NCBI RefSeq assembly: GCF_011386835.1
Contig: NC_088793.1
Span: 101,618,001 to 101,682,000, forward strand
Reading direction: 5' to 3'
Source: Chrysemys picta bellii
Taxonomy: Eukaryota
DNA length: 64,000 nt
The notes beneath the pieces are model-generated. The model ran no database searches. It was not told the DNA's origin and saw only the letters and a list, made by a program, of their open reading frames with translations. Made by a program: the position numbers and the translations under genes. Positions 11,134 to 62,765 of this stretch are shown here, one piece after another (the first letter of the stretch is position 1; every line of letters begins with the position of its first letter).

Positions 11134-11177
11134 TTAGAATATTGCTGTGACACAGGAGATTGTTCTTTCTCCTGTAA

Positions 11178-12346: not shown

Positions 12347-13372
12347 TCAGTTTGGAAATAAATTCATTGTTGAACAGTCAAGCCGGAGCATTTTGAAGCT
12401 CACAATCACTTTCATTGCTTTTCGAAACCAAGGATAAAAGAGAGAGTAAATCAAAGGATTAATGGCAGAGTTGGAATAAGTGAACCAAACCATAATGTCA
12501 AAGAGAAGGGGTGGAGTTATGAAGTTAAGAAAAGCATCAATTATTACACTTATAAAAAAGGGTGACCAACATACCAAAAAAGCAATCGCAGCTATACCCA
12601 GGGTTTTAGCAGCTTTCCTCTCTCTTTTCCTACCTCTGTCACTGTAATTACCAAATGACTGGATGTTGTTGCTCATCATCTCTATCATTCTAGCTTGTCG
12701 TTTAGCCACAGCAAAGATTTTGCTGTAAAGTGCTATCATTGTAAAAAAAGGTATTAGATAAAGGAGAGCAGATACAACCACCCATGTTTTGTTGAAGACA
12801 AGTTGACAGCTCCCTACACAGGAGAGGGCATTTACTAATTCTTGTATCCCTTTGTCATTAGCCCCAGTGAAGACAACAGAAAAACTGTATACTAATGAAA
12901 ATATCCAGGCAATAGCTATGAACATGCCTGAAACTGGCACTGTGAACTTGAGAGGGTAAATTAAAGGATCAGTAACCGCAACGTAGCGATCAACAGAGAT
13001 GAAGCACAAGTGAAATATTGATGAATAACAAAAGGATGCATCTAAACAACTGTGAAATCTACAGAATGTTTCCCCAAAATACCAGCATGTTTCAACAGAT
13101 CTTATACTGCTGAAGGGCAGCACAGTCAGACCCAAACAAAAATCAGCACATGCCAAGGAGGCAAGCAAGATATTTGTAGGAGAGTGAAGCTGTTTGAAAT
13201 AAGCAATTGAAATCATTACCATTAGGTTTCCACCTAGTGTAAGAATTGTCAGAAAACCAAGCACAACATACAAAGTTATCCGGATTCCAGAAGACCATGA
13301 TGTTTTATGGCAAGATCCATTAATATTCTCAAAGCAATATTGTGCTTCTTCATTCTGAAGCACTGAAGTCAT
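12347..13372 (-). CDS. TAAR: Trace amine-associated receptor (TAAR6-9 clade-like), 341 aa, copy 1
   Basis: 7TM class A GPCR; DRY, RERKAAKTLGI and TAAR fingerprint NSAINPLIYSLFYPWF; Asp3.32 present; intact single coding exon. Confidence 0.95.
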   Translation of the reverse strand: MTSVLQNEEAQYCFENINGSCHKTSWSSGIRITLYVVLGFLTILTLGGNLMVMISIAYFKQLHSPTNILLASLACADFCLGLTVLPFSSIRSVETCWYFGETFCRFHSCLDASFCYSSIFHLCFISVDRYVAVTDPLIYPLKFTVPVSGMFIAIAWIFSLVYSFSVVFTGANDKGIQELVNALSCVGSCQLVFNKTWVVVSALLYLIPFFTMIALYSKIFAVAKRQARMIEMMSNNIQSFGNYSDRGRKRERKAAKTLGIAAIAFLVCWSPFFISVIIDAFLNFITPPLLFDIMVWFTYSNSAINPLIYSLFYPWFRKAMKVIVSFKMLRLDCSTMNLFPN

Positions 13373-13896
13373 GTTGTGCTTTTGTTGTCAACTATTCTGA
13401 ACTTTTTAGTTTTTGAGTTTGTATACCAATGGTGATGATGTGGCACCAGTTGGTGAAGCTCTTCAGTTTTTAAGTCTTTCTGAAAAAGAGAATTAAAGTT
13501 GACATGAGTGAGAGTACAATAATTCCAAAGTGTTCTATTATGACCATCAATATACTAAAAGTGTATGTGTATAGGAAGTAAATAAAACATAGCAAAATAT
13601 CTCTTGTAACTACAGTTTTCAATGGCATTTTGAAATAAAAAAGTAAGAAAAATACTTTATAATTGAAAAGTTTCTCCTGTGCTATAACATAGAGTTTAGT
13701 TTTACCTATTTATATTTATTTAAATTTCCTCGATGCCTCATCTTTCTGTTAAGTCAATTGCAAAACTCCAATTGACTTCAGTGTAATTGGATGGACTCCT
13801 AATGCCTTACCTTTTGAGAAGCTTTTCTTCAGATATAATCCTGGATTAAAATGTCAATAGAAGGCAGGAAGAGATGCATGTTTCAGTAGTGCTTTA

Positions 13897-13926
13897 TCCT
13901 CTGAGTTGTTTTAGCAAAGTTAATGA
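13897..13926 (-). promoter_or_regulatory. Candidate TAAR promoter composite (EBF/O-E-like + homeodomain)
   Basis: TCCTCTGAG-N15-TAATGA, same spacing upstream of all five TAARs. Confidence 0.5.
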
Positions 13927-14354
13927 GAAAGTACTTGCATGCTGTTCTCTGAAAAATGAGGGATGGGGTGAGGGGAAAAACAGGAAACACAAGGGAAATT
14001 TAGTAATCATCCCATAAATTGAAATCCCTCTAGTAAAGGGTGTAAACACTGACAGATACTTAGTTTGAAAAAATCCCATCATTAAGCAATCTACTTTGAT
14101 TTATCACAAGACAGTCCTTTATTTAAGTATATACTGTCTTGCATATGTTTGAACTAAGTCTCATTATCAGAACCTTCCTTTATTTTTTGAAGGCAAATTT
14201 AACTGGCTCCCACAGCTACCAGGTGTTATATAAGTATTATTACTGTAAATTACTTTGTCAGGAATACTGACTGAGGAATCTGAGGTCATAGATAATGGTA
14301 CGTGTGTTAAAGAAAATCTATCCCACCTTTATTAATCTTGCAGTGGGGTATTTT

Positions 14355-14358
<4 letters not shown>

Positions 14359-14392
<34 letters not shown>

Positions 14393-14400
14393 GCTGTCTC
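14359..14400. repeat. (CT)n microsatellite upstream of TAAR; homologues at ~31025, ~42145, ~53628
   Basis: Visible dinucleotide tract of different length in each unit. Confidence 0.8.
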
Positions 14401-15309
14401 TCATATTTTGGCCATTTTTCTACACTGTGGGCCAAACTCTTTCCAGTGCTAAGAATGGAGGAATGATTGAGGCAGTTTGTGTCATCCCTATGTGTCTGCC
14501 GTGGTCCAGTCTAGCCCACAGTGCAAATTAGGACAGCCCTAAATTGCACTATAGTTGCCATGGATTCTATGAGCCTTCTGGTACTCTAGCTACATCTGAC
14601 TAGGTTGCCAATATACCCCTTCCCTCCTCTGGCCTATCCCCAGTGTGCCACAGAAGTTCCCCTGCCCCATGGATTTCTGCAAAGGGAGAGTTGGTGGAAC
14701 AAGCTCTGATCGTCTCTAAAGGCCACTCGCTGGAGGACTGTGCATCTGCTGTGCTGGTGAGGGCAAAGGAGCTGTGGTCCATATATGATTTAGGTCCTGT
14801 CTTCTTTCATGAGTTTGAGTAAGTGGAGAAGTATGGTTGAGATGGCGCTTCCATTCCAAACCTATATTTTCCATGGCTTATACATTCCTCAAAAATGTAG
14901 GTCGATCCTTTAGTAGTGTTCATACCCTTAGGCCTGATGTATATTATGAACTTATGTCGGTATAATTTCATCGCTATGGGGTATGAAAATCCACACCCCT
15001 GAGCTCTACCGCAGTTAAAGCAATCTCATCTCCAGTGTGGACAGCACTAGGTCGATGGAGAATTCTCTCATCAGCCTAGCTACCGCATCTTGGGGAGGTG
15101 GGTTACCTATGCCAATGGGAGAACTGCTCCCATCTGCAGAGGTAGCGTCTTCTCTGAAGCCTTACTTTTGCCCTGTTCCCCCACCCCCGCTAGCAGGAGG
15201 ACGTGCTGTCTTTAGCCTCCTTCTGCTAGCCAGGAGGGGGATTCACTGTTTTTACCCAACCCCGCTGGGAGGGGGACATGCTGTTTTCATTCACACACAC
15301 ACTCACACA

Positions 15310-15513
15310 CACACACATCTCTGCCCAAGGAGGGGTTCAAGGTTGCAAACTCATTCCAGGGCTCAGTAGGGAGCTTAGCTGCTGCTGAATCCTGACCTGG
15401 AGTGTCAGCTGCTAGATCTGGAGCCCAAACTGTGCTTTGTTCAGAGTTAGAAACATTTCAGAGTTACGGACAGCCTCCATTCCCAAGGTGTCCGTAACTC
15501 TGAGATTGTACTG
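15310..15513. mobile_element. Tc1/mariner (Tigger-like) MITE fragment
   Basis: Internal IR TCAGAGTTACGGACA / TGTCCGTAACTCTGA and terminal GAGATTGTACTG; absent from the homologous spacer at ~43360. Confidence 0.4.
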
Positions 15514-15551
15514 TTCTGCCACCTAGCTAGTTTTTCTGCATTTGTTAGTTG

Positions 15552-15785
15552 CAGGGCCGGCTCCAGGCACCAGCTTCTCAAGCAGGTGATTGGGGCGGCA
15601 GCACCAGGTATTCAGCAGCAATTCGGCGGACGGTCCCTCACTCCGCCTGGCAGTGAAGGACCTCCCGCCGAATTGCCGCCGGAGATCGCGATCACGGCTT
15701 TTTTTAGATTGCGATCACGGCTTTTTTTGTTTGTTTGTTTTTGTTTTGGCTGCTTGGGGTGGCCAAAACCCTGGAGCCGGACCTG
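15552..15785. mobile_element. hAT MITE (CAGGGCCGG family)
   Basis: TIR CAGGGCCGGCTCCAGG / CCTGGAGCCGGACCTG; 8-bp TSD GTTAGTTG; empty site at ~43385. Confidence 0.9.
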
Positions 15786-15793
15786 GTTAGTTG

Positions 15794-18682
15794 TGCATTT
15801 GATTTTTTTCCTTTCTAAGTGAAATACTTTGCACTCGTCTTTATTAAATTTCATCTTGTTGAATTCAGACCAATTCTCCAATTTGTCAGTCATTTTGAAT
15901 TTTAATACTGTCCTCCAAAGTGCTTGCAATCCCTCGTAGCTTGGTGTCATCAGCAAATTTTATAAGAATATCCTCCACTCCCTTTTTCAAGTCATTAATG
16001 AAAATGGTGAATAGTACTGGACCGAGGCCTAACCCTTACGGGACCCCACTAGTTATACCCTCCCAGTTTGACAGCAAACCATTGATAACTACTCTTTGAG
16101 TAGGGCCTTTCAACCAGTTATTCACCCACCATACAGTAATTTCATGTACACTTCATTTTCCTAGTTTGTTTAAGAGACTGTCATGTGGAACTGTGTCAAA
16201 AGTCTTATTAAGATGATGTTAAAAAAAAAAAGAAAAAGTGAACAGAGTTTGAGCATAGAAGTTTCTGGTTATCAGGGAATAATCAGGTACAGATTATCGA
16301 GGGTGCAAAGTTTGGTTTAAGATCAGATGGCATAAGGAATACATAATCTGCAGTATCCCCGATTGGGGGTAAAGGGTTGATGGGTCAAAGTACAGGCATT
16401 GAGATATGAGGGTACTCAAATCAAGACATATCATGTCCACTGCTTCCCCCTTATCCAGTAGGCCAAAGAAGGAAATTAGATTGGTTTCGCACGCTTTGTT
16501 CTTGACAAATCCATTTTGCCTATTCCTTATCTTATTATCCTCTAGGATCTTACAAATTGATTGTTTGCTAATTTGTACTAGGGCTGTCAAGCGATTAAAA
16601 AAGTTATTCTTGATCAATTGCACAATTAATTGCACCGTTAAACAATAATAGAATACTATTTTTAAAAAATATTTGTGGATGTTTTCTACATTTTCAAATA
16701 TATTGATTTCAGTTACAACACAGAATACGAAGTGTACAGTGCTCACTTTATATTTATTTTTTATTTCAAATATTTGCACTGTAAAAAACAAAAGAAATAG
16801 TATTTTTCATTTCACCTCATACAAGTACTATAGTGCAATCTCTTTGTCATGAAAGTTGAATTTACAAATCTAGAATTATGTAGAAAAAGTAACTGCATTC
16901 AAAAATAATACAATGTAAAACTTTAGAGCCTACAAGTCTGCTCAGTGCTACGTCAGCCAATCTCTCAGACAAACAGGATTGGGGACAATTTGCAGGAGCT
17001 ACTGCTGCCCGCTTCTTGTTCACAATGTCACCTGAAAGTGAGAACAGGTATTCTCACGGCACTGTTGTAGCTGACGTTGCAAGATATTTACGTGCCAGAT
17101 GCGCTAAAGATTCATATGTCCCTTCATCTTCAACCACCATTCCATAGGACATGTGTCCATGCTGATGATGGGTTCTGCTCGGTAACGATCCAAAACAGAG
17201 CAGACCTATGCATGTTCATTTTCATCATCTGAGTCAGCCACCAGTAGAAAGTTGATTTTCTTTTTTGGTGGTTCGGGTTCTGTAGTTTCCACATCTGTGT
17301 GTTACTCTTTTAAAACTTACGAAAGCATGCTCCACACCTCATCCCTCTCAGATTTTAGACTGCACTTCAGATTCTTAAACCTTGGGTCGAGTGCTGTAGC
17401 TATCCTTAGAAATCTCAGATTGGTACCTTCTTTGTGTTTTGTCAAATCTGCTGTGAAAATGTTCTTAAAATGAACAAGTGCTGGGTCATCATCTGAAACT
17501 GCTATAACATGAATATATGTCAGAATGCGGGTAAAACAGAAGAGCAGACATACAATTCTCCCCCAAGGAGTTCAGTCACAAATCTAATTAACACATTATT
17601 TTTTTAACAAATGTCATCAGCATGGAAGCATCTCCTCTGGAATGGTGGTTGAAGCGTGAAGGGACAAACGAATGTTTAGCATATCTGGCACATAAATACC
17701 TTGCAACGCCGACTACAAAAGTGCCATGCAAACACCTATTCTCACTTTCAGGTGATGTAAATAAGAAGCAGGCAGAAGTATCTTCCATAAATGTAAACAA
17801 ACTTGTTTGTCTTAGCGATTGGATGAACAAGAAGTAGGACTGAGTGGACTTGTAGGCTCCAAAGTTTTACATTGTTTTGTTTTTTAGTGCAGTTATTTAA
17901 CAAAAAAAATCTACATTTGTAAGTTACACTTTCACGATAAAGAGATTGCACTACCGTACTTGTATAAGGTGATTTGAAAAATACTATTTCTTTTGTTTAT
18001 CATTTTTACAGTGCAAATATTTGTAATAAAAATCATAATATAAAGTGAGCACTGTACACTTTGTATGCTGTGTTGAAATAGAAGTTAATATTTGAAAATG
18101 TAGAATAACATCCAAAATATTTAATAAATTTCAATTGGTATTCTATTTTTAACAGTGCGACTAACTAAAAAAAATTAATTGTGATTAAAAAATTAATCAT
18201 GATTAATCGCGTGCGTTAGCTGTGATTAATCGATAGCCCTAATTTGTACCAATATCTTTCCAGGTATCAAAGTTAGACTGACTGGTCTATAATTCCCTGG
18301 GTCCTCTTTGTTCCCATCTTTAAAGATAGATACTATGTTTGCCCTTCTCCAGTTTTCTGGGACCTCACTCATCTTCCAGGATTTCTCAAAGATAATTGTG
18401 AATGGTTCTGAGATTGCTTCAGCTACTTCCTTAAGTATCTAAGATGAACTTGAGTACATCTAACTTATCTAAATATTCTTTAACCTCTTTGTTCCCTACT
18501 TTGGCTTGTGTTCCTTCCCTCTTGTTGTTAATATTAATTGAGATGAGTATCTGGTCACTATTAACCTGTTTAGTGAAGTCTGATGCAAAATAGGCATTAA
18601 ATACCTCAGTTTTCTGGATGTCATTAGTTATTATCTCTCCTTCCCCGCTAAGTAGAAGACCAACACTTTCCTTCATCTTTCT
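15794..18682 (-). mobile_element. Old CR1 LINE ORF2 fragment, interrupted by two insertions
   Basis: DKLENWSEFNKMKFNKDECKV, KNKACETNLISFF, DKGEAVDMI and KESVGLLL motifs in broken frames. Confidence 0.85.
16579..18241. mobile_element. hAT deletion derivative with two inverted transposase 3' ends
   Basis: TIR TAGGGCTGTCAAGCGATTAA / TTAATCGATAGCCCTA; 8-bp TSD ATTTGTAC; hATC dimerisation motif PLEWW..KYLATP..LFSLSG on plus (17622-17837) and mirrored on minus. Confidence 0.9.
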
Positions 18683-19542
18683 GGCACTGGCTGACAGTAA
18701 TATATAAGTATAAAATATTAATATTTATATTACTGATTTGGTAAATAATGATACGGTATAGGTTTTAAAGGGATGGAAAAACATTTCTTTTTCCAGTATT
18801 GTTAGTACTTCCTAACAAATGGAGATGAATTTCACTGAATAACTAATTTTTGATCTTTCTTTGTTTGCCTTTCTTTAATTCTGGAGGACCATTTTATCTT
18901 CTCCGTCACAAAATTACAACCAATGGATATTGCTCTATTATTGTTTCATAGCATAATCTAGTATTAAATTAATAGTGTCTGTTCTCTCAGAAAGCACAAG
19001 AAAGCAGGTGGAGTATTCACCATTCCAGTCTTGCACTCCTCTTCCTTACTGTGGAGCTGTGACTGCAGAGCATGAACCTGGGAACCCTGGGTGCTGAAGC
19101 CTGGTAGTCCTGTCTTTTCAATATTGTTGTTTCCACCCACTGTCTTCTCTTCCGAGTCATCTTAGGATTCTAGGCAGTTCTACAATTTTATTATTGTTTC
19201 TTAGTTGGGATATCAAGAACCTTAACATTCTCATCACTGCCTTTTTATTTTTAGAATAGTTAAAGTGTTCATTCACAGTCTGAAATTAGAGTCTAATGTC
19301 CGTTGTATAAAAAAAAATAAGAAAAGAGAAAAACCCTTCCAAATATATGTTATGCTTATGTAAATATAACAGATGTTACTTAACCTCTGAGTTCTTCAGG
19401 GCAGAAACTGGTTTTTGTTATGTATTTATGCGTAGCACTGTGAAGCCATGATCCCTGCTTGGAGCCCTTAAGTTCTATCACAATAGAATACTATATACAC
19501 AATACAATACACAACACAATACAATACACAATTGTAAATACA

Positions 19543-20912
19543 TATAACCCTTCTGCCCATCTAAGTTGGCAGCAACAAGGGCCGGGTTCTGTATCTAGGG
19601 GTTCCATTTCAATAACACAATGCAAAACCGGCTCGAGCCCCCACCCAGTGACCTGGGACAATTACATACCACCCCCTGGGTGCCTCTAAGAGGCAATACT
19701 TCCCCTCTCGCAAGCACGGAGTCTGAGTGTAACAGAAAATGTTTAATAACAAGAGGTAAACGACATCAGCATTAAATTGGAAAAACACCACAAACAGGAT
19801 TCATAACACAAACCATGAGCAAAAAAACCCACCCCAGCAAGTTGGGCTGTATCCTTTCCCTTGGGTTCTTGAAACCAGCAACCCAAGGATCACCAAAGTC
19901 CCAAAAGTCCAACAACCCCCCAAAGTCTCTGTCCCTGGTCAGTGCAGCCCCAGAGTTATGGGGGGGCCCACGCAGGGTGTTAAGGGGCACCTTACGTGAT
20001 CCGAGGCTCACGGGGTTCTGCCGCAGCCTTCACCACGAGCCGCTCCACTCCACCAGCTGCCCCGTGAGCTGCTCCCGCCGTCCCACGAACTGCTCTGGCA
20101 GCTGCTCCACTCTGCTCACCGACCTGTGAGCCGCTCAGCTCTGCTCCACTTCAGCCGTCCCTTGGGCCACTCCCACAAGGCTCCGCTCTGCTCCGCTCCG
20201 CTCACCGACCTGTGAGTTGCTCAGCTCCACTCCAACCGCCCCAGCAAGGCTCCACTCTGCTAGCTGCTCCGCCAGCCGCTTAGCAATATAGCTTCAGGCT
20301 CCCCCACTAGTTAACACAGCCTCAGTGATCTCAGCTCTTAATAACTTTAGCTCTTTTGTGATTTCAGCTCTTAGCAATTTCAGCTCATAGTAGGGGAGCC
20401 CCAGTGCTAGTGCACCATTGGCCCAAAGTGAATTCCGCTCAGCAGTCTGTAACTAGACTTGTAATGGAATCAAAGTTAGCTCTGACATTCAACAGTGGAG
20501 AGAGGAGGTAGTGCAATTGGTGTTTCAACCCCTCAGAGAGGGCCCATACCATCAAGTACAAATACCTGTCCCCAGCCTCTCCCTATTCACTGGGTTTTGT
20601 AACCCATGCCCCTTGTCAAGCAAGTGCTACTTAGGTAATGGTGAAGGACTCACTCAGTCCTTCTGTCATACAACAGTTTCACTGGCCTTGATTCACAGAA
20701 TCAGGGTAACAAAACTTTATTCTTCCTGTCCCAATAACAGAGAAAACTGGGGATCCCACACCAGCCAAAGTAACCACTTTGAGTTGCTGTTGTTTCATGC
20801 CAGGCGAGTGGGTGTGCCTTTGCAAACAAGATCAGCGCCTGGAGTTCTTTTCCACACTCGCCATAATTCACCACCAGATGTCAGGGTAGAGCTCATCCTG
20901 ACTCTGCTTACA
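19543..20912. mobile_element. Solo LTR (1370 bp), Gypsy-type, inserted in a CR1 3' fragment
   Basis: TA(TG-derived)TAACCC...CTGCTTACA termini; 4-bp TSD TACA at 19539-19542 and 20913-20916; unit-2 specific. Confidence 0.75.
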
Positions 20913-21181
20913 TACATAAAAGGTTGTTACAAGAAGGAGGGAGAAAAATTGTTCTTCTTAACCTCTGAGGATAGGACAAGAAGCAAAAGGACTGTCAGAA
21001 TGGTTAAACATTGGAATAAGTTGCCTAGGGAGGTTGTGGAATTTCCATCATTGGGGATTTGTAAGAGCAGGTTAGACAAACACCTGTCAGGGATGGTCTA
21101 GATAATACTTAGTCCTGCCTTGAGTGCAGGGGACTGGACTACATGACCTCTCGAGGTCCCTTACAGTTCTATGATTCTACG
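20913..21181 (+). mobile_element. CR1 LINE 3' end
   Basis: KGCYKKEGEKLF, VKHWNKLPREVVE; 3' UTR GACCTCTCGAGGTCCCTT and ATTCTATG tail. Confidence 0.85.
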
Positions 21182-21361
21182 AATAATACTAAGAGGAAGT
21201 TCAAAAATTTAGAAGAAGAAAAACCCAAACAAACAAAAAAAACATTAGCTGAAGTTCTGATATCAATACTCATTCCACATCACTCTTCCATCTCGTTGAC
21301 TATTTCAGACCCGGTACCCTCTCTTCAATTCATTTAAATAATATGATAGTGTTTAGTCATA

Positions 21362-22521
21362 CAGTAACTCCTCTCTTAACGTTGTAGTTATGTTCCTGAA
21401 AAATGCGTCTCTAAGTGAAACAATGTTAAGAATCCAATTTCCCCATAAAAATTAATGTAAATAGGGGGGGTTAGGTTCCAGGGAATTTTTTTTTTGCCAG
21501 ACAAAAGGCATTATATACATTTTAAATGAGCAATTTAATACAGGTATAAATTTTAAACAATTTTAAAGAAACAATTTAATACTACAGTCATCACTGCTGA
21601 GTATGAAGCTTGGTTGAGGTGGTGGAGTCAGAGAGTGGAAGAGGATGGATTGTCCGGCTGCTCCTCTTGCTGTTCTTGCAAACACAGGCACTGACTTTGC
21701 CGGGGGCAGGGGGCTCAACCCTCAGCCCATCCACTCCACCCCTTCCCCCAAGCTCCCACCCTTGACCCACCTCTTCTCCCCCCCACCTCCTCCCACTTTA
21801 CTTCGCACGCAGCGTCCTCACTCCTCCCCCCTCCCTCCCCTCCCTTCTGAACCCTGCAAGCCAGCTGATTGCCGCAGGCAGGAGGCAGGGGGGGAGGGGG
21901 GGAGGCATGCCCAGTCCTTGCTCCCCCCCTCCCTCCTGCCTGGGGCAATCAGCTGGCTTGTGGCATTTAGGGGACTGCGGGGAGGAGCGAGGACTTGCCG
22001 CGCAGGCTCCCGCTCCCTCCCCCCTAGGTTGATCAGATAGCAAGTGTGAAAAATCAGGATGGGGTGGGGGGGGAATAGGTGTCTATGTAAGAAAAAGCTC
22101 CAAAAATCGGGACTGTCCCTATAAAATCAGGACATCTGGTCACCCTACTCCCCCCCCTCCCCCGCCTCCTGCCCGGGGCAATCAGCTGGTTTGCGGTGTT
22201 CAGGAGGCAAGGGAGGGAGGCGGAGCCTGCGCACCAAGTCCTCACTCCTCCCCCCTCTCTCCTGCCCCTTAAATGCCACAAGCCAGCTGATTGCCACGGG
22301 CAGGAGGCGGGAGGAGGAGGGGGAAGGCGCTGATCCTCAGGGTCCACCAGCGGGTGGGAGGCACTTTGGAGAGGGGGGGTAGGAAGGCTGGCAGCTGTGG
22401 AGAAAGCAGGGAGCCAAACAACGTAATAGTGGAGCATTGCACAACTTTAAATGAGCATGTTCCCTAATTGATCAGCAACGTAACAACGTTAACCGGGATG
22501 ACTTTAAGTGACGAGTTACTG
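21362..22521. mobile_element. Tc1/mariner (Tigger-like) non-autonomous DNA transposon
   Basis: TIR CAGTAACTC / GAGTTACTG; TA TSD; empty site in the other units; GC-rich interior. Confidence 0.8.
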
Positions 22522-25107
22522 TATTTATTAAAGCATGCCAAAGGGAAATCATCCTAGAGGTGGAACAAAGTAGATTAGCAGGGCTTAGGTGAGGTCTTTA
22601 TGCCAGCTATTTGGAATTCAGTTGAGCAGGGATGGTGCTTTTTGATATTTTTTTACATAAAGAGTAATTTTTACATAAAGAGTAATAAAAATAGCGTGTG
22701 ATAGCACTCCCATGTATCTGTGCTATCACACGCTACATAAATTCTGTATGCATGCTGACTGTGGGTTTAATATTTCATTTTGATTAGCAATTATTTTTAT
22801 GCTGCTATTTGTATTGCTTTGTTTTTCTTACAGTTGAAATATTCAGGATTACCCCGTATTACCCACTAGATGGCACAACAGTGACATTATCCTGCTCTCC
22901 TCTGCTAGCTGAAGATTTTGGGCTTGATTTTGATCTCACATTGGTTTTACACCAATATAACTCTACTGATTTCAGTACAGTCACTCCTGATTTATGGAGA
23001 CTCAGCTGAGATCAGAATCAACCCTTTCTCTCAAAGCAATATACGTACCAGTATTTTGTTTTGGATTTGTCCTTTTCAGAGATGACTCTTTGTCTGGAAC
23101 CTGGGGGACAGTTTACTTTGATTAACAGCATATGGACAGCTCTGTCTACATTTCAGAACTGGAAACAGAGTAATGTGCTTTTGAACTGATCAGACCCTGC
23201 TGCACAGGCTGGTCATGAAAAGTTTCATTGAACATTCTGCAGTATAAAACTCTGTTGAGTGCTTGTTAGAGGTCTCAGAATTGATCAGTCACAGACCTCT
23301 TCTCCAAGGAGGGCTGCCATTGGCCCATAAATACTGAAGTATCATATAAGGGTATGTGGCCCATCCTCTTCCACCTCCTCCACATTCTACAGTCTCCTGA
23401 AGAAGACTGGCAGCCCTTTCTGTAGTACATATGGTTCACAGCTGTCTGCCCACATTCTTATTGAACACCTTCTTTTTAGAGCTTAAGTGGTACAGAGGGC
23501 CTTGTGTACCAGGGTGAATTCTATCCTCTAATATCAAACATTTGATTACACTTCTTTTATCTTCAGTTTTGAACAATAAAATTAATGATACATGCATGAA
23601 ATGATAAACTGTATAGCAGATGTTTCCAAGGCAGTTTTTATTAGTATGCCTGATCAGAATGAATAACAATAATTTATAATTATATGCATATATTTATTTA
23701 TTTGTACTAAAGTAGTGCCTAATAAATTCTCAGCCTTCAGTGTTGTAGGGTCTGTACAAACATATGGTGGAAGCTGGTCCCTGGCGCAAACAGTTTACAA
23801 ACTAATTACATGTATTGCAAAACCACTTACACAAATTTACACTCCATAGTGTTTTGCATATTATTTAGACATAATCTTCAACAGAAGCAGAGTTAGGCCA
23901 GTGTTAGGTGCTTTTGAAAATCTCACTCTATATTCTTAAATCTGTGCTTAAGTATCCTTCAATCTCCCTACCTTGCCCATCCTCTAGTTTGTCTCATCCA
24001 TCTGTTATATCGTATCTATTAAAACAACTTCTTTGAGGGGCAGGGACTGTCACTTATTGTTTGACTGTATATTGCCTAGCACAATGCAGCCTTACTCTGT
24101 CTCTTAATCATGCTACAAAATCACTACGACTTGATATTTCAAATTTTACATTACAGTTGCGCAACCCTGATGTGGTCCTCAGGCCAAAAAATTTGCCCAC
24201 TCCTGATCTATTATGTTAAAATATGATGATCAAAACCCCAGAAGTGCTCCCCCTGGCTACTAACAGAGTTTTACCTTTCTCCCTTTGCTATTACCTGTTG
24301 TATTTTTTGTGATGGTGACTGGGTTTTGCTTGCTATACTTCTGTTCATTCAAATCTGTTGTTCAGCTAGCACAGACATTTTGGAATAAAAGACTAGCCAG
24401 TGGATCCTGCCATGCATGGATATTTCCCTGAGCTCTGGGCTTCCCAAGTATTTATGTCCCAGAATGTACCATAATTTTCAAACACTGGATCTTGTGGAGT
24501 TGCAGAAAAGTGGTGTTCTGTGAAATACAGTGGTAGGAACCAGTGAAGAGGCTACAGCTGGCTGCTTCCAAAGGGAGTAGGATGAAGTGGGCAACCTGCC
24601 TATCCCAATGAAAAGGCTGTGTCATGAGAAGGGGGAGTAGACAGCTACTCTATTTCCAACAGAGGCACTATTTATATGATATTTGATTAATATTAAGCTA
24701 AAACATTATTTATTCAACTGAATACTAAAAGTCAGTTGTCATCCTATTCCTATGTGTAGCCAAGTACGTTTTCTCGCAGAGGCTGTAAGCCACTGATGAA
24801 GTTGGTTAAAGCCTTGAGTCAGTTGGGCATTTATAAAATAATGTCTCATGCTCTCATTAATGATTTGGATATAGGCAGGCAGCACAGTTTTTCTGTTGTC
24901 CTGATGCAAATTTATCTCTGCCGACTCCATGTCTCTGTTGTGTGTGGCTTGTTATCTCTGCTGTGAGTGTAAAGGAAGTAGGAGTGGCTCTTAAGGCAGA
25001 GGGATGTATGGCTTGGGACAAAGAATTCCTACAGGGAGAGCCCTGAGAACTGCCAAGCCAGGGGAGAAGGTTTGGACTGAAATTTATTATTAATTTCTTG
25101 TTAATAA

Positions 25108-47751: not shown

Positions 47752-47872
47752 TAACTATGACTAAACGGTATCAAATTGTTTAAGTTAATTGAAGAAAGGG
47801 CACAGAGTTTTTCAGATTCTGTGCCCTTTCTTCAATTAATTTAAACAATGTGATAGCGTTTAGTCATAGTTA
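47752..47872. repeat. 55-bp-arm inverted repeat (hairpin), unit-4 specific
   Basis: 47752-47806 is the reverse complement of 47818-47872 with about three mismatches. Confidence 0.9.
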
Positions 47873-51407: not shown

Positions 51408-52433
51408 TCAGTTTGGAAATAAATTCATTGTTGAACAATCAAGTCGGAGCATTTTACAGCTCACAATCACTTTCATTGCTTTACGAAACCAAGGATAAAA
51501 GACAGAGTAAATCAAAGGATTAATGGCAGAGTTGGAATAAGTGAACCAAACCACAATGTCAAAGACAAGGGGTGGTGTTATGAAGTTAAAAAAAGCATCA
51601 GTTATTACAGTTATAGAATAAGGTGACCAGAATACCACAAAAGCAATCACAGCAATACCAATGGTTTTAGCAGCTTTCCTTTCTCTTTTGCTAACTCTGT
51701 CACTGTAAGTGTCAGACGACTGGGTGTTGTTGCTCATCATCTCTATCATTCTAGCTTGTCGTTTAGCCACAGCAAAGATCTTGCTGTAAAGTGCTATTGT
51801 TGTAAAAAAAGGTATTAGATAAAGGAGGGAGGTTACAGCCACCCATGTTTTGTTGAAGAGAATCTGACAGCTCCCTACACAGGAGAGGGCATTTACTAAT
51901 TCTTGTATCCCTTTGTCATTAGCCCCAGTGAAGACAACAGAAAAACTGAATACTAATGAAAATATCCAGGCAACAGCTATGAACATGCCTGAAACTGGCA
52001 CTGTGAACTTGAGAGGGTAAATTAAAGGATCAGTAACAGCAACATAGCGATCAACAGAGATGAAACATAAGTGAAATATTGATGAATAACAAAAAGATAC
52101 TTCTAAAGAACTATGGAATCTACAGAATGTTTCCCCAAAATACCAGCATGTTTCGACAGATCTTATACTGCTGAAGGGCAGCACAGTCAGACCCAAACAA
52201 AAATCAGCACATGCCAAGGAGGCGAGCAAGATATTTGTAGGAGAGTGAAGCTGTTTGAAATAAGCAATTGAAATCATTACCATTAGGTTTCCACCTAGTG
52301 TAAGAATTGTCAGAAAACCAAGCACAACATACAAAGTTATCCGGATTCCAGAAGACCACGATGTTTTATGGCAAGATCCATTAATATTCTCAAAGCAATA
52401 TTGTGCTTCTTCATTCTGAAGCACTGAAGTCAT
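51408..52433 (-). CDS. TAAR: Trace amine-associated receptor, 341 aa, copy 4
   Basis: DRY, NSAINPLIYSVFYPWF; Glu3.32; intact ORF. Confidence 0.95.
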   Translation of the reverse strand: MTSVLQNEEAQYCFENINGSCHKTSWSSGIRITLYVVLGFLTILTLGGNLMVMISIAYFKQLHSPTNILLASLACADFCLGLTVLPFSSIRSVETCWYFGETFCRFHSSLEVSFCYSSIFHLCFISVDRYVAVTDPLIYPLKFTVPVSGMFIAVAWIFSLVFSFSVVFTGANDKGIQELVNALSCVGSCQILFNKTWVAVTSLLYLIPFFTTIALYSKIFAVAKRQARMIEMMSNNTQSSDTYSDRVSKRERKAAKTIGIAVIAFVVFWSPYSITVITDAFFNFITPPLVFDIVVWFTYSNSAINPLIYSVFYPWFRKAMKVIVSCKMLRLDCSTMNLFPN

Positions 52434-52590
52434 GTTGTGCTTTTGTTGTTAGCTATTCTGAATTTTTTAGTGTTTGCATTTGTATACCATTGGTGATGAT
52501 GTGGCACTGGTAGGTCAAGCTCTTCAGTTTTTAAATCTTTCTGAAAAAGAGAATTAAAGTCGACATGAGTGAGAGTACAATAATTCCAAA

Positions 52591-52696
52591 AAACAACAAG
52601 GAGTCCGGTGGCACCTTAAAGTCTAGTCTTTAGTCTTTAAGGTGCTACCGGACTCCTTGTTGTTTTTGTGGATACAGACTAACACGGCTACCACCT
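52591..52696. mobile_element. Penelope-like terminal palindrome (short)
   Basis: AACAACAAGGAGTCCGGTGGCACCTTAAAG / CTTTAAGGTGCTACCGGACTCCTTGTTGTT plus GATACAGACTAACACGGCTAC tail; 12-bp TSD AATAATTCCAAA. Confidence 0.7.
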
Positions 52697-53070
52697 AATA
52701 ATTCCAAAGAGTTGTATTATGTCCACCAGTATACCACAAATGTGTAGGTAACTAGGAAGTAAATAATAGAACATAGCAAAATATCTGTTGTAACTACCGC
52801 TTTCAATGGCGTTTTGAAATAGGTAAATAAGTAGCAAAGAATACTTTATTATTGAAAATATTCTCCTCTGCTATAATATAGAATTTATTTTTTACCTATT
52901 CATATTTATTTATTTAAATTTCCTCGATGCCTGATCTTTCTATTTAAGTCAATTGCAAAACTCCCATTGACTTCACTGTGGTTGGATGGATTCTTAATTC
53001 CTTACCTTTTGAGAAGCTTTTCTTCAGATATAGCCCTAGATTAAAATGTGAATAGAAGGCAGGAAGAGAC

Positions 53071-53154
53071 GCATCCGAAGAAGTGAGGTTTTAACTCACG
53101 AAAGCTTATGCCCAAATAAATCTGTTAGTCTTTAAGGTGCCACCAGACTCCTTG
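53071..53154 (+). mobile_element. Penelope-like 3' fragment carrying a hammerhead-like motif
   Basis: GCAT-CCGAAGA-A-GTGAG/CTCAC-GAAA-GCTT-ATGC followed by GTTAGTCTTTAAGGTGCCACC; absent from the other units. Confidence 0.65.
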
Positions 53155-53173
53155 ATGTTTCAGTAGTGCTTTA

Positions 53174-53203
53174 TCCTCTGAGTTGTCTTAGCAAAGTTAA
53201 TGA
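53174..53203 (-). promoter_or_regulatory. Candidate TAAR promoter composite
   Basis: TCCTCTGAG-N15-TAATGA. Confidence 0.5.
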
Positions 53204-54206
53204 CACAGTACACGCACACTGTCCTCTCAAAAATGAGGGGTGGGGTGAGTGGAAAAACAGAAAACACAAGGGAAAGTTAGTTATCATCCCATAAAGTGAA
53301 ATCCCTCTGGTAAAAGGTGTAAATACTGACAGATATTTAGAGTCTGAAAAAACATCATTAAACAATCTACTTTGATTTATCACAAGACAGTCGTTTAACT
53401 AAGTATATACTGTCATGCATATGTTTGAATTAAGTCTCGTTATAAGATCCTTCCTTTATTTTTTTGAAAGCAAATTTAACTGGCTCCCCCAACAACCAGG
53501 TGTTATCTCAGTATTATTACAGAATTGCTTTGTCAGGAATACTGACTGAGGAAACTGAGGTCATAGATAATGGTACGTGTGTTAAAGAAAATCAATCCCA
53601 CCTTTATTAATCTTGCAGTGGGGTATTTCTCTCTCTCTCTTTCTCTCTCTCATTTTTCTACACTCTGGGCCAAACTCATTCCAGTGCTAAGACTGGAGGA
53701 ACCATTGAAGCAGCTTGTGTCATCCCGATGTGTCTGTTGTGCTCCAGTGCAGCTCCCAGTGCAAACTAGGGCAGCCCTAAATTGCACTCTAGCGCCTATG
53801 GCTTCTATGGGTCTTCTGGCTTTGGAATAGCCAGGGTGCAGAACTACCCTAACTACACTGGCCATGGTGCCAATATATCCCCTCCCTCCTCTGGCCTACC
53901 CCCAGCCTGCCCCAGAAATTCCCCTGCCCCATGGGTTTCTGCATGTGAAAAGTTGGTGGCGCAAGCTCTGAACATGGCAGGGTTCGTCTGCCCGGAGGCC
54001 ATTTGCTGGGGGACTGTGCATCTGCTGGGCTGGTGAGGGCAAGGGAGCTGTGGGCCATATATGATTTAGGTCCTTTCTTCCTCAAAGAGTTTGAGTAGGT
54101 ATAGACGTATGGTTGAGATGGCACTTCCATTCCAAACCTATATTTTCCATGGTTTATATATTCCTCAGAAATGCAGGTCGATCCTTTAGTGGTGTTCAGA
54201 CCCTTA

Positions 54207-54424
54207 GGCTTAGTCTATATTACGAACTTATGTTGGTATAATTCTATCGCTCCAGGGTATGAAAAATCCACATCCCTGGTTGCCACAGTTAATGCGATCT
54301 CTCCCCCACTGTGGGCAGCAGTAGGTCGATGGGTAGGTGGATTACTTATGCTGACGGCATAGGTAGCATCTTCTTTGAAGCGCTACAGTGGCACCACTGT
54401 AGCAGTTTATGTGTAGACAAGCCC
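54207..54424. mobile_element. Harbinger-type MITE; complete here, truncated in units 1-3
   Basis: TIR GGCTTAGTCTATA / TGTAGACAAGCCC; TTA/ATA flanks. Confidence 0.6.
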
Positions 54425-54517
54425 ATAGAGACCCTTATTCAGGTGGCATAAGTTAAAGCAGCTGAGGGCGCAGGATTGGCACAGGCTCAGAAAGCCAGAA
54501 CCATCTCCCTGAGAACA

Positions 54518-56342
54518 TGTAATGATTTGGGGAATTGTCTGTACTGTCACCAGGGCAACTGCAACCCATATCCCACCTCTGTGGTTCCTCAAGGGCACCC
54601 ACTCTAGGCTCCCAGCATCTCAGCCATCACCTAGCTTGGGAAGAGACTTGCATCTTTCGTCCTCCTGACCAGGGTTTTTCCAGGCTGCACATTTCCCTGC
54701 TTACACTATGATATCCCCAGCAAGCCAGGCTGCCTAGATAGGCCAGCATCTGTGCTTTGCTGTCTCTCTGAAGGCTCTGAACATCTGTAATTGCCAGCTG
54801 TTACAAGTTACCACACAGGTATTTATAAACAAGCACTTTAGTCTTAAGGTGAAAGTATTACCGAGAAAACATATTAAAAACAATGAAAGTTTACCAGAAG
54901 TAATGCATGTTAAAAAGCTTCCTAGAGGACACTCCAACTCCATCCTTGGGATCAGTCCTTCAAAACTCACAATTAGGGTTTTCCCTGTGCCTACTAGTTC
55001 ATAACTGTCTCAGATTCAGAACCAGAACAACCATGAATAGTTTAGTCTTTCCTTTATATAGCTTTGGTCTTTGAGCTTGGCCTTATGTGATCAACAGACA
55101 ATGGCTCACTCCTCAGGACATAGCTTCAAAAGGCTGGATTGTTGCATAACCAGAGGTTGGGAATTTGCATACACCTCTTCTTTATATCCCAGGAAGTTCA
55201 TTTCACACATATTATCCCCAAAGTCCATTTTTGTCATGCACATTGTCCAATATAGTTTCTTGAGCATTCGGGCCTTACATCACATCTCCCAACTAGAGAG
55301 GTTACATATGATCCTGGCCCAAAATTATACCTAAACCATTATTTAACAAAATGGATCCCCAAGATACTTAAACTTAATTCAGTAAAGGTTTTCAAGGATT
55401 TTGCAGGATATTGCTGTATCTTTAACATGTGTGAGATTATCAGATCTCTGTATGTATCCTTAGCACGCTGCAAAATGCATTTTGAAGGTGCAGCCTTATT
55501 TGTTCTTTGTTGTACTTTCACCTTCGTGTGTTGGACTGAAATTGCAACAAGTTTAGTGGCAAAGGCCTAATAATAGAGGGTCACTAAATATTCAAAAAGA
55601 AAACACCCTAGACAAAAGACTGGCTTCTACCCTGGAGAATTGGTTTGTCAGGGGAGAAGTTGCCTGATAACAAAGTTACTTAGTATAACCCTAAGGTCAT
55701 CTGTTAAGGCTGACCAGGGAGTCACAAGTTTGAGGGACTGGAAGGTTATAAAAGGGCAGAAGCTGCTCTGTTTTGGATTTGTTGGCCATTTTCACAAGCT
55801 CAGGATGAGGAAAACTACTGCAAGAGCCTGCGGGGGTGGGAGGGTGGGGGAGTGAACTCTATCTACCTGAATACTGGTCCCCTAAGGACTTCCAAAGGAA
55901 GGGTGAGCTAGAATGAGGAGCATTGTGTTCAGGATGTTTGTTGTTTTCTATATGATCTGTAATTTGTATTTTCTGTGCTTAAATAAAGAGCAATAATGCA
56001 TTAGAATTCTGTGAAAGGTGTTTTTGTGTTATATGCTATACCCACCACGTGGCCCTTTGAGGAGGTAACCCATAAGGCTTACACTTATGAGTGGAGTTCT
56101 GAGAGAGGGTGTGTTTTAAGCTACAGAAGAACCTGAGGAGTCAGCACAAAGCCCAGGTGCTAGGCAGCTGGGCCATGTGGTCACAGTTCTCAGGAGGGGA
56201 TGCTAAACAGCTGCCATGGCTTCCCAAGAGTCTGCACCCCAAGAGTGTGCCTAAAGACTTCAAGACAGGGGCAATGACTGGACCCTGTTCAGAGTCTGAG
56301 GGGCTTAAAATACCTGGAGTCCAATGGCTGGGTCACCTCACA
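54518..56342. mobile_element. One or two decayed LTR-like elements
   Basis: TGT start, GTCACCTCACA end, AATAAA at ~55982; no coding motifs; internal boundaries uncertain. Confidence 0.35.
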
Positions 56343-56666
56343 GCTGGCTAAGCCACCAGTAGATGAAGCCCAATCAGATCTGTGCCCAGGCCCTCTTCTG
56401 TTCCTGTGCCCATGCTCATCATTGTTATTACTCATCTGCATATGTGTTTATAAGTTTGGGGCCTATGCTTCAGTGTTCCAGGTAGGGATAGGTTTGTCTG
56501 AAATGACTGAGACAAAACTCAGTATTTCAGAAAGTCATTCCGAAATGTTACAAGTCCAAGCCAAAATCTTATGTGCTGAGAATAAACATTGTTAAAGAAA
56601 AAATGGTCTTGAGTTAGCATCTGTACCTACTCATGACACCACTGCTTGAGTTTCCTTTACATTAGT

Positions 56667-58690
56667 AAACAACATAAGAATGGCCATACTGGGTCAGACC
56701 AATGGTCTATCTAGCCCAGTATCCTGTCTTCTGACAGTAGCTGATGCCAGATGCTTCAGAGGGAATGATCAGAACAGGCCACTTATTGTGTGATCCATCC
56801 TCTGTTCTCCAGTCCCAGCTTCTGGCAGTCAAAGACTCAAGGACACCCAAAGTATTGGGTTGCATCCCTGACCATCTTGGCTAATAGCCATTGATGGACC
56901 TATCCTCCATGAACTTATTTAGTTCTTTTTTGAACATAGTCATACTTTTGGCCTTTACAACATTCTCTGAGAAGAAGTTCCACAGATTGACTATGTGTTG
57001 TGTGAAGAAGTACTTCTTTTTGTTTGTTTTAAACCAGCTGCCTATTAATTTCATCAGGCAATCCCTGGTTATTATGTTATATGAAGGAATAAATAACATG
57101 TTCCTATTCACTTTTTCCACGCTAGTCATGATTTTAAAGACTTCTATCATATCCCCCTTTAGTTGTCTCCTTTCTAAACTGAATGGTCCCACTCTTTTCA
57201 ATCACTCCTCATAAGGAAGCTATTCCATACCCCTAATCATTTTTGTTGCCCTTCGCTGTACATTTTCCAATTCTAATATAACTTTTTTTAGATGGGGGTG
57301 ACTAGAACTGCACACATTATTGAAGATGTGGGTGTACCATGGATTTATATAGTGCCATTATGATATTTTCTCTTATTATCTATCCCTTTCCTAATGGTTC
57401 CTAGCATTCTGTTAGCTTTTTTGACTGCTGCTGCACATTGAGCAGATGTTCTCAGAGAACTATCCAGGATGACTCCAAGATCTCTTTCTTGACTGGGGAC
57501 AGTCATATAGACCCATCATTTTACATGTACTGTTGGGATTGCTTCCCAATGTGCATTTAGCAACACTGAATTTCATCTGCCATTTTCTTGTTCAGTTACC
57601 CAGTTCTGTGAGATTTCTTTGTATCTCTTCACAGTCAGCTTTGGACTTAACTACCTTGAGTAATTTTGTATGTCTGCAAACTTTGCCACCTCACTGTTTA
57701 TCTCTTTTTCCAGATAATTTATGAATATGGTGAACACCACTGGTTCCAGTACAGATCTTTGGGGGACCCCATTACTTACCTCTGTCCATTGTGAAAACTG
57801 ACCATTTATTCTTACCATTTGTTTCCTGTCTTTTAACCATTTACTGATACAAGAGAGGGCCTGCCCTTTTATCCCATGAATGCTTATTTTGCTTAAGAGC
57901 CTCTAGTGTGTGACCTTGTCAAAGGCTTTCTGAACGTCCAAGTACACTATATTCAATGGATCAATTTGTCCACATTTGCTGACTCCCTCAAAGAATTCTA
58001 ATAGATTGGTGAGGTATGATTTCCCTTTACAAAAGCCATGTTGCCTCTTTCCCAGAAAATTGAGGTCATCTATGTGTCTTATAATTCTGTTGTTTATTAT
58101 AGTTTCAACCAATTTTCCTGGTACTGAAGTTAGGCTTACAGGCCTGTAATTGCCAGGATTGCCTCTGCCGCCTTTTTAAAAAATTGGCATCACATTAGCT
58201 ATCCTCCAGTTACCTGGTACAGACGCTGATTTAAATGGTAGGTTACATGCTACAATTAGTAGCTTTGCAATTTCATATTTGAGTTCCTTCAGAATTCTTG
58301 GGTGAATACCTTCTGGTCCTGGCAACTTATTGCTGTTTAATGTATCAATTTGTTCCAAAACATTTTCTACTGACACCTCAATCTGAGAGAATTCCTCAAA
58401 TTTGTCACCTAAAAAGAATGGCTCAGGTGTGGGAATCTCCCTCACATCCTCCACAGTGAAAACTGATGGAAAGAATTCAAGTAGCTTCTCCACAATGGCC
58501 TTGTGTTCCTTGAGTTCTCCTTTAGCACCTCGATCATCCAGTGGCCCCACTGATTGTTTGGAAGGCTTCCTGCTTCTGATGTACTTAAGAAAAATTGCAG
58601 TTAGTTTGTGTCTTTTGCTAGTTACTCTTCAAATTCTTTTTGGCCTGACTAATTATAATTTTACACCTGACTTGCTAGAGTTTACGCTCC
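56667..58690 (-). mobile_element. Old CR1 LINE, ~2 kb, frameshifted
   Basis: AACATAAGAA tail; KGKSYLTNLLEFF, YLDVQKAFDKV, PGPEGIHPRILKEL, KKYFFTQHIVNLWN motifs. Confidence 0.9.
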
Positions 58691-61308: not shown

Positions 61309-61355
61309 TCATTAACTCTGACACAAGAGCTCAGGGGAGAAAACACTAATATAAA
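61309..61355 (+). promoter_or_regulatory. Candidate TAAR promoter: homeodomain + EBF-like + TATA
   Basis: TCATTA-N15-CTCAGGGGA, then TATAAA at 61350. Confidence 0.5.
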
Positions 61356-61736
61356 TTGCAAGCCTTTTCTAGTATTCATACCTCAATTCAAATCAATTTA
61401 TGAAAGGGAGTTTCTCAGAAGATGAGGCATTAGCAGGCAGAAATCAAGTAAGAATGACTCCTACTATTGAATCCAAACACAATAACCACAATAATTTATT
61501 TTTTCTTATTTTAAACCACTAGGGAAAATCTGCTGCTACTGAGATCTTACATTTTTACATTTTTTTTAACTTTCTGAATTCATCATAATTTCTGTGTTAA
61601 AATAAGTTCGTGGAGTTATTCTATTAACATGCATATTTATTTTTTCCAGGAGAAGTTGCAAACAGGAGCATATTATCCCTTTCCTAGATCATAAACATCA
61701 GTTCAGGAATTCAAAAATAAGACTTTGAGGGAAATA

Positions 61737-62765
61737 ATGAACTCAACGTTTTTTGATAAGGAAGATTTGCAGTACTGCTTTGAAAATATGAATGAATCTT
61801 GCTATAAAACACCATTGTCTTCTGGACTCCGAGTAACCTTGTATATTGTGCTTGGTTTGCTGACGATTCTCACTGTGGCTGGAAACCTACTGGTAATCAT
61901 TTCAATTGCTTATTTCAAGCAGCTTCACTCTCCTACAAATTTTTTGATCGCCTCCTTGGCATGTGCTGACTTTGGTTTGGGTCTGACTGTGCTGCCCTTC
62001 AGAACTGTAAGATCTGTTGAAACCTGTTGGTATTTTGGGGAAACATTCTGTAGATTTAACAGTTGTTTAAATGTATCTTTCTGCCTAGCATCAGTATTTC
62101 ACTTGTGTTTCATCTCTGTTGATCGATATGTTGCTGTCACTGACCCTTTAATTTATCCAGTTAAGTTCACAGTGCCTGTTTCAGGCGTGTTCATAGGTGT
62201 TGCGTGGACATTTTCATTAGTATACAGTGTTTATGTTGTCTTCATTGGGGCTAATGAAGAAGGGCTACAAGAATTAGTAAATGCCCTCTCCTGTGAAGGG
62301 GGGTGTCAGATTATGTTAAATAAAATGCAGGTGGTTGTATCCTCGCTCCTTTATTTCATACCTTTCTTTACAGTGATAGCACTTTACAGCAAGATCCTTG
62401 CTGTGGCTAAACGACAAGCTAGAATGATAGAGATGATGAGCAACAACACCCAGTCATCTGATAATTACAGTGACAGAGTTGGCAGAAGAGAGAGGAAAGC
62501 TGCTAAAACCCTGGGTATACCTGTGATTGCTTTCTTGGTATTCTGGTTACCTTTTTTTATAACTGTAATAATTAATGCTTTCCTCAACTTCATAATTCCA
62601 CCCCTTGTCTTTGACATTGTAGCTTGGTTTGCTTATTCCAACTCTGCCATTAATCCTTTGATTTACTCTCTCTTTTATCCTTGGTTTCGAAAAGCAATGA
62701 AAGTGATTGTGAGCTGTAAAATCCTCCGCCTTGATTGCTCAACAATGAGTTTGTTTTCTGAATAA
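61737..62765 (+). CDS. TAAR: Trace amine-associated receptor, 342 aa, divergent copy 5 (TAAR9-like ECL2)
   Basis: First ATG at 61737 (the ORF track starts at TTG 61725); DRY, GANEEGLQELVNALSCEGGCQ, NSAINPLIYSLFYPWF; Asn at 3.32. Confidence 0.93.
   Translation: MNSTFFDKEDLQYCFENMNESCYKTPLSSGLRVTLYIVLGLLTILTVAGNLLVIISIAYFKQLHSPTNFLIASLACADFGLGLTVLPFRTVRSVETCWYFGETFCRFNSCLNVSFCLASVFHLCFISVDRYVAVTDPLIYPVKFTVPVSGVFIGVAWTFSLVYSVYVVFIGANEEGLQELVNALSCEGGCQIMLNKMQVVVSSLLYFIPFFTVIALYSKILAVAKRQARMIEMMSNNTQSSDNYSDRVGRRERKAAKTLGIPVIAFLVFWLPFFITVIINAFLNFIIPPLVFDIVAWFAYSNSAINPLIYSLFYPWFRKAMKVIVSCKILRLDCSTMSLFSE

Follow-up and report, generated by a model that had tools for sequence, protein, structure and literature searches.

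Five intact single-exon open reading frames (ORFs) encoding trace amine-associated receptors (TAARs), 338-346 aa in length, are located within 50 kb of a 64-kb stretch of Chrysemys picta bellii DNA (contig NC_088793.1, positions 101,618,001 to 101,682,000; hereafter the window). They carry three different residues at position 3.32, where Asp is regarded as near-universal among TAARs. Copy 1 (c1) has Asp, copies 2 to 4 (c2-c4) have Glu and copy 5 (c5) has Asn (codons GAT/GAA/GAA/GAA/AAT), and all codons and residue numbers agree with those of an initial annotation made from the sequence. The cluster is probably best explained as a canonical receptor (c1), an old Glu subfamily (c2-c4) and an Asn orthogroup of the Testudinoidea without the 3.32 salt bridge (c5). 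Position 3.32 was defined as the residue 18 positions before the Arg of the DRY motif, and the in-frame codon was read at each copy. The features are as follows, in coordinates of the window (TM, transmembrane helix; ECL2, extracellular loop 2).

c1, 12347..13372, minus strand: 341 aa; Asp3.32 (D111), GAT at 13040-13042; Ala3.33, Phe6.51/Phe6.52, Asp6.58.
c2, 29004..30032, minus strand: 342 aa; Glu3.32 (E112), GAA at 29697-29699; Leu3.33; Asp6.58.
c2, pocket residues of TM6, minus strand: Tyr6.51 at 29214-29216; Ser6.52 at 29211-29213.
c3, 40141..41157, minus strand: 338 aa; Glu3.32 (E108), GAA at 40834-40836; Leu3.33; Tyr6.51/Ser6.52.
c4, 51408..52433, minus strand: 341 aa; Glu3.32 (E111), GAA at 52101-52103; Val3.33; Tyr6.51/Ser6.52.
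c5, 61737..62765, plus strand: 342 aa from the ATG at 61737 (the ORF listing opens farther upstream, at TTG 61725); Asn3.32 (N112), AAT at 62070-62072.
c5, other sites, plus strand: Asn3.28 at 62058-62060; Glu187 (ECL2) at 62295-62297; Gln5.39 at 62328-62330.
c5, other sites, plus strand: Phe6.51 at 62553-62555; Asn6.58 (AAT) at 62574-62576; Asp7.36 at 62613-62615.
Tandem segmental duplication, 6540..58000, no strand assigned: four units of ~11 kb bearing c1-c4, found by blastn of 47000-58000 against the window.

In HMMER alignments that were gapless through TM3, the 3.32 residues of all copies faced the structural Asp3.32 of mTAAR9 (8itf) and mTAAR7f (8pm2). Trp7.40 and Tyr7.43 were present in all five copies, and the canonical amine-binding set of Asp3.32, Trp7.40 and Tyr7.43 was complete only in c1. 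An acidic group is retained at 3.32 in c2-c4, and the residue of c5 is uncharged. The initial annotation had stated that four of the five copies lost the amine anchor; the canonical Asp is indeed absent from four, but the statement goes too far for the Asp-to-Glu (D>E) changes, in which the carboxylate is kept. Residues 5.42/5.43, counted from P5.50, are V/S in c1, c2, c3 and c5 and V/T in c4. As had been noted, a compensating Asp5.42 or Asp5.43 of the clade III type is therefore missing from every copy, and neither Asp nor Glu was found in the outer half of TM5 in any of the five. Clade II TAARs are one residue short in TM5, and 5.43 as counted here corresponds to 5.42 of the TAAR7f structure paper; neither is Asp. 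The lack of an acidic residue in c5, likewise noted earlier, holds for 3.32 and 5.42/5.43 only, as Asp7.36 and an ECL2 Glu are present. Arg2.64, Trp7.40 and Tyr7.43 are kept in c5 together with Asp7.36.

All five proteins matched Pfam 7tm_1 (PF00001; E 1e-52 to 1e-55, profile positions 1-260) and carry the DRY, W6.48 and NPxxY (NPLIY) marks of class A G protein-coupled receptors, to which they belong. The TAAR fingerprint of TM7, NSxxNPxx[YH]xxx[YF]xWF, was matched by regular expression in 5/5 (for example NSAINPLIYSLFYPWF), and the ORFs are intact with Tyr7.43, Trp6.48 and the TAAR motif, as had been noted. Searches of the PDB gave E-values of 1e-130 for mTAAR9, 1e-127 for mTAAR7f, 1e-81 to 1e-95 for TAAR13 and TAAR1 and 1e-46 for 5-HT4; TAARs are thus nearer than classical aminergic receptors, and the single coding exon and tandem cluster are also those of the TAAR family. 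Among 120 homologues listed, nearly every descriptively named one was a TAAR. The nearest solved relatives, mTAAR9 and mTAAR7f (E ~1e-130, ~57-60% identity, gapless through TM3 and TM6), have in common with the turtle genes a D/W/Y-type pocket scaffold, Arg2.64 with an acidic 7.36, and Asp6.58, but both have Asp3.32 and the turtle genes lie on a separate reptile branch.

Phylogenetic relationships were examined in a quick IQ-TREE analysis of 68 reptile and outgroup proteins with SH-aLRT (Shimodaira-Hasegawa-like approximate likelihood ratio test) supports, from which two short fragments were excluded. The turtle and alligator genes grouped beside marsupial and eutherian TAAR7/9-like proteins in this tree, which had neither clade I/III outgroups nor named TAARR1 members. 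On this basis the five genes are probably clade II olfactory-type TAARs of a reptile branch nearest to mammalian TAAR6-9, and they probably fall into three old, separately conserved orthogroups. The turtle/reptile branch is probably the 'TAARR1' subfamily of PMC8890504. All five proteins were already in NCBI and UniRef under the names "TAAR7a-like" or "TAAR9-like", and c1 shows a single aa difference from Chrysemys picta bellii XP_005280524.1.

The 19 Glu3.32 proteins formed one clade (SH-aLRT 99) with members in Emydidae, Geoemydidae (Mauremys), Testudinidae (Chelonoidis) and Cheloniidae (Eretmochelys, Natator, Caretta). Its sister was the c1-type Asp3.32 clade, which has a similar taxon range, and both were nested in a group (support 95) whose soft-shell members (Pelodiscus, Carettochelys) all have Asp. 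The c1 orthologues of Chelydra, sea turtles, tortoises and geoemydids all have Asp as well. Since the Glu clade spans four families while the soft-shell relatives carry Asp, the D>E change appears to be single and old, arising once after the split of the Trionychia and before the divergence of pond and sea turtles. The latter divergence probably took place on the order of 100 million years ago. Within the clade, c2 grouped with Emys P0001, Malaclemys P0153, Mauremys reevesii P0157 and Chelonoidis P0004, and c4 with Trachemys P0003, Emys P0002, Terrapene P0158 and sea-turtle genes; the orthologues of c3 were Trachemys P0155 (3 aa differences) and Emys P0160. As each of c2, c3 and c4 has separate orthologues of its own in Emys, Trachemys, Malaclemys or Terrapene, the duplications are old too, and both they and the D>E change are much older than this species.

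Asn3.32 was found in seven orthologues of c5, drawn from six other species records, namely those of Emys, Terrapene (two records), Trachemys, Chrysemys, Mauremys mutica and Chelonoidis (a 302-aa partial sequence). These proteins formed one clade (support 97) covering Emydidae, Geoemydidae and Testudinidae, all of the Testudinoidea. In Eretmochelys, P0032 and the Glu-type gene P0005 are ~14 kb apart and point in opposite directions, an arrangement like that of c5 and c4, and P0032 keeps both Asp3.32 and Asp6.58; this match in position and orientation was judged from the coordinates of two fetched genes. The fetched genes of Mauremys mutica are in the order c1-type, Glu-type, Asn-type and then another Asp-type downstream, and the gene order of the window agrees with the fetched genes of both species. 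The downstream gene of Mauremys mutica (L004:19738-20766) is an intact Asp3.32 TAAR with Asp6.55 and Asn6.58, 8.7 kb beyond the Asn-type gene, which indicates that the turtle cluster extends past the right end of the window. Non-acidic residues at 3.32 were also seen in two other clade II proteins: Val in Alligator mississippiensis P0038 (TAAR9-like isoform X2) and Asn in P0056, a 343-aa TAAR7-like protein of mammal type from a Logan assembly. The charge may thus have been lost more than once in tetrapods.

The only extra changes at 3.32 required by the tree were two cases in Malaclemys. The c1 orthologue (L012:1001-2029) carries the tract TTC CAT AGT TCT TTA GAA CTA TCT, which is of the Glu type including its synonymous markers. 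The c5 orthologue (L003:1001-2029) has GAT GCA (Asp and Ala, as in c1) where all other members have AAT GTA. These two short tracts in the 3.32 region are apparent gene conversions, which would mean that the anchor residue can swap between paralogues.

Read data were used to confirm the AAT codon at 62070-62072, as the initial annotation had advised. The codon was covered by Logan contigs of three runs with zero differing letters (three studies under three organism labels), and GAT was not seen; one of these runs is an independent sample under the species label of the window itself. The same codon was found in four other assemblies, those of Emys, Trachemys, Terrapene and Mauremys mutica. Because contigs of three studies and four other assemblies agree, AAT is genuine and not an assembly slip.

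Selection was estimated as the ratio of nonsynonymous to synonymous substitution rates (dN/dS, ω). Nei-Gojobori pairwise ω between emydids and Mauremys was 0.36-0.45 in the Asn clade, with bootstrap upper limits <=0.75; within Emydidae there were too few changes to judge, and pairwise ω was noisy with a range including 1. Under the codon model GY+F3X4 in IQ-TREE, ω was 0.53 in the Asn clade (5 sequences), 0.565 in the Glu clade (6) and 0.533 in the c1-type clade (4). ω=1 was rejected (p=0.008, 0.0008 and 0.003, respectively) in a test made slightly liberal by fixing kappa, the transition/transversion ratio, at its estimate from the free model. The Asn and Glu clades are under purifying selection of a strength indistinguishable from that on the c1-type Asp clade, and the near-neutral ω that had been named as a possible outcome was not borne out. 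It is very improbable that the Glu and Asn copies are incipient pseudogenes or that their odd codons are sequencing errors. The noisy ω within Emydidae and the lack of expression evidence in our run search would fit decay, but no ORF is disrupted, the class A and TAAR motifs are all kept, and the same residues recur in families that parted tens of millions of years ago. Because constraint on them is indistinguishable from that on the Asp class, neither the Glu nor the Asn class appears to be decaying; pseudogenisation was rejected on the ω tests, and sequencing error on the agreement of independent runs and other assemblies.

Other pocket positions also differ among the copies. Compared with c1 (Ala3.33, Phe6.51, Phe6.52), the Glu copies have Leu or Val at 3.33, Tyr6.51 and Ser6.52, but Tyr6.51/Ser6.52 are not confined to Glu genes and were seen in Asp-bearing soft-shell genes too. 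The Asn clade has Asn6.58, Phe6.51 where its relatives mostly have Tyr, and Gln5.39 where they have Trp, with Asn3.28 in emydids. At residue 187, which lies between the two cysteines of ECL2, Glu was present in 7/7 Asn-clade members versus at most 1/11 Asp-type relatives. Clade-diagnostic sites were taken from comparison of extant sequences and set against a pocket set of 14 sites fixed beforehand (the TAAR7f contacts plus 6.58, 7.36 and 7.40). No significant enrichment was found in this set, and a concerted, pocket-focused remodelling, which had been considered, is therefore not claimed.

Natural Glu3.32 is known from mouse TAAR7a/7d and rat TAAR7a/7c (PMC4695389, PMC8546428), and among the homologues listed there were 25 mammalian TAAR7-like clusters with Glu3.32. 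Position 3.32 has been reported as positively selected in TAAR7 (PMC4786312). N,N-dimethylcyclohexylamine activates mouse TAAR7d (107 µM) and rat TAAR7a (49.5 µM) (PMC8890504 table S4). The mammalian TAAR7 paralogues are, like the turtle genes, clade II olfactory receptors in tandem arrays with Glu3.32 and no Asp5.42. However, the two origins of Glu are independent, as mouse TAAR7A falls outside the reptile clade in our tree; 3.32 varies between Asp and Glu among the mammalian paralogues, whereas in turtles Glu is fixed throughout an old clade of four families; and the turtle genes combine Glu3.32 with Tyr6.51/Ser6.52, where mouse TAAR7A has Tyr/Phe. Judged by this comparison, Glu3.32 in turtles represents an independent and older origin of a variant that is known and partly de-orphaned in rodents. 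The proviso of the initial annotation that Glu or Asn at 3.32 might already be common and characterised is thus borne out for Glu, since ligand-responsive rodent TAAR7 receptors carry it, but not for Asn. Asn3.32 is common among c5 orthologues, yet no characterisation was found, and no report of Asn3.32 in a TAAR or of binding motifs in turtle TAARs came up in the literature searches. The Asn3.32 orthogroup is apparently a conserved exception new to the literature. Turtles are absent from the TAAR surveys PMC4786312 and PMC8890504, and table S4 of the latter contains no half-maximal effective concentration (EC50) for reptile clade II receptors.

Mutants of 3.32 have been described in several TAARs. 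Ala, Asn and Glu substitutions were made in mTAAR9 and lamprey sTAAR365, and charge-neutralising mutations of Asp3.32 ended polyamine detection in both, while activity was retained in sTAAR365 D3.32E (PMC8546428). TAAR13c D112E was inactive and was rescued by D279N at the outer gating site 6.58, Asp6.58 being the outer amine-binding gate of this receptor (PMC6018111). Tyr6.51 touches the amino group of the ligand (PMC8546428).

On the explanation proposed here, c1 retains the canonical Asp3.32. c2-c4 are quite likely to be amine receptors in which the Glu carboxylate serves as counter-ion, in a salt bridge to the protonated amine, with a shifted preference for ligand size; the longer, deeper-reaching Glu side chain and the smaller Ser6.52 would account for the shift. 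Glu probably still anchors amines, because the natural Glu3.32 receptors TAAR7d and TAAR7a respond to a tertiary amine. In c5, Asp3.32 has become Asn; in addition, Asn6.58 stands at the outer amine 'gate', Tyr6.51 is replaced by Phe, and residue 5.39 is Gln. We infer that c5 is a working receptor, maintained by selection, that cannot form the canonical salt bridge at 3.32. Its ligand would therefore be held by hydrogen bonds and hydrophobic contacts, and could be a neutral or weakly basic compound or an amine anchored differently. As c5 is real, constrained and without an acidic 3.32, a non-canonical ligand mode is a fair hypothesis. The ligand classes and the olfactory expression of all five copies are predictions of this kind.

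Several observations weigh against this interpretation. The test of ω=1 was slightly liberal, as said above, and ω of ~0.5 indicates moderate constraint only. No RNA run containing c5 turned up in the run search; a 161-nt piece (depth 2.4, 2 mismatches) came from a run only guessed to be RNA and is not evidence of expression. Glu is not always tolerated at 3.32, mTAAR9 D3.32E being nearly dead (PMC8546428). In mTAAR7f, D3.32A left the pEC50 (negative logarithm of EC50) for its amine similar and raised basal activity (PMC11364543), so that amine detection may survive without the charge. Asn6.58 was found in some Asp3.32 relatives as well, and the pocket set took in 2/12 diagnostic changes of the Asn clade (p=0.08) and 1/4 of the Glu clade (p=0.16).

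A different account, close to that of the initial annotation, combines a recent, lineage-specific expansion of Glu3.32 receptors having shifted amine specificity with a c5 that senses non-amine odorants; we regard it as rather unlikely. The three Glu copies do stand in tandem 11-kb units, but each has orthologues in other emydid genera, and the Glu clade covers four families and reaches the sea turtles, which contradicts an expansion confined to this lineage. Asn3.32 is common to three testudinoid families. Detection of neutral odorants by the c5 orthogroup can be considered apart from the expansion. It is suggested by the absence of Asp from 3.32, 5.42/5.43 and 6.58 and of the Tyr6.51 hydroxyl, and by the polyamine detection lost from two TAARs on neutralisation of Asp3.32 (PMC8546428). 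A non-amine, indole, activates lamprey TARLL1b of the wider family without use of Asp3.32 (PMC8890504), but this receptor belongs to a distant lineage and Asp3.32 is still present in it. Asp7.36 and the ECL2 Glu remaining in c5 speak against the idea, and a non-amine ligand of this orthogroup is a tentative suggestion.

Conversely, c5 could still be an amine receptor whose ligand cation is held by Asp7.36 in the vestibule, by the clade-specific Glu187 of ECL2, or by hydrophobic and cation-pi contacts. Teleost clade III TAARs (zebrafish TAAR16c/e/f), which are functional and under selection, have likewise lost Asp3.32 and sense amines through another Asp (PMC4695389). They differ in belonging to another clade and in having a compensating Asp5.42 with an inverted amine pose, where c5 has Val/Ser. 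The similar pEC50 of mTAAR7f D3.32A (PMC11364543) and the binding of the distal amino group of spermine by Glu7.36 in sTAAR365 (PMC8546428) are in favour of an amine ligand, as are the near-exclusive occurrence of Glu187 in the Asn clade and the intact aromatic cage (Trp6.48, Trp7.40, Tyr7.43). However, Asp/Glu7.36 of mTAAR9 mainly forms a structural salt bridge to Arg2.64, which c5 retains too; the C-x-x-x-C pattern would put Glu187 upstream of the ECL2 segment that faces the pocket; and two more amine contacts, Asp6.58 and the Tyr6.51 hydroxyl, are gone. This alternative is also rather doubtful. On our preferred reading of c5 as a receptor without the 3.32 salt bridge, a neutral or weakly basic odorant is a possible but uncertain ligand, an amine bound through a different site or through the aromatic cage is possible to a like degree, and other outcomes, such as altered basal signalling, may make up the rest.

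A tetrapod orthogroup that is conserved and under selection, yet neutral at 3.32 and devoid of aspartate in TM5, offers a clean natural test of whether TAARs can leave amine chemistry. Zebrafish TAAR19f also lacks both Asp3.32 and Asp5.42 but is a single orphan gene of a distant lineage; c5, unlike TAAR19f and TARLL1b, belongs to a tetrapod orthogroup conserved in three turtle families. Three natural controls are available: the sea-turtle orthologue, which has Asp, the variant of Malaclemys, which also has Asp, and the Asp and Glu paralogues next to c5. If the c5 orthogroup does sense neutral odorants, a tetrapod TAAR would for the first time be seen to have changed its ligand class in this way, and selection would have maintained the change over tens of millions of years; for comparison, the orthologue of Malaclemys, with Asp/Ala at 3.32/3.33, would then serve as a natural revertant.

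The window contains zero N runs, and no sixth TAAR or TAAR fragment was found in it by tblastn. The tandem units bearing c1-c4 share 81-91% DNA identity by blastn, reaching well past the coding sequences. Two further ORFs on the minus strand had no convincing family and are probably repeat-derived rather than genes: that at 4966-5889 had only a sub-threshold match to DUF4939 (retrotransposon gag-like), and that at 32825-33619 gives a Gly/Arg-rich, low-complexity translation of GC-rich DNA. A retroelement ORF of the LINE (long interspersed nuclear element) type, 453 aa in length, is located between c3 and c4 at 45487-46848 on the plus strand (Pfam RVT_1, E 3e-34), and this insertion sits inside one of the 11-kb tandem units.

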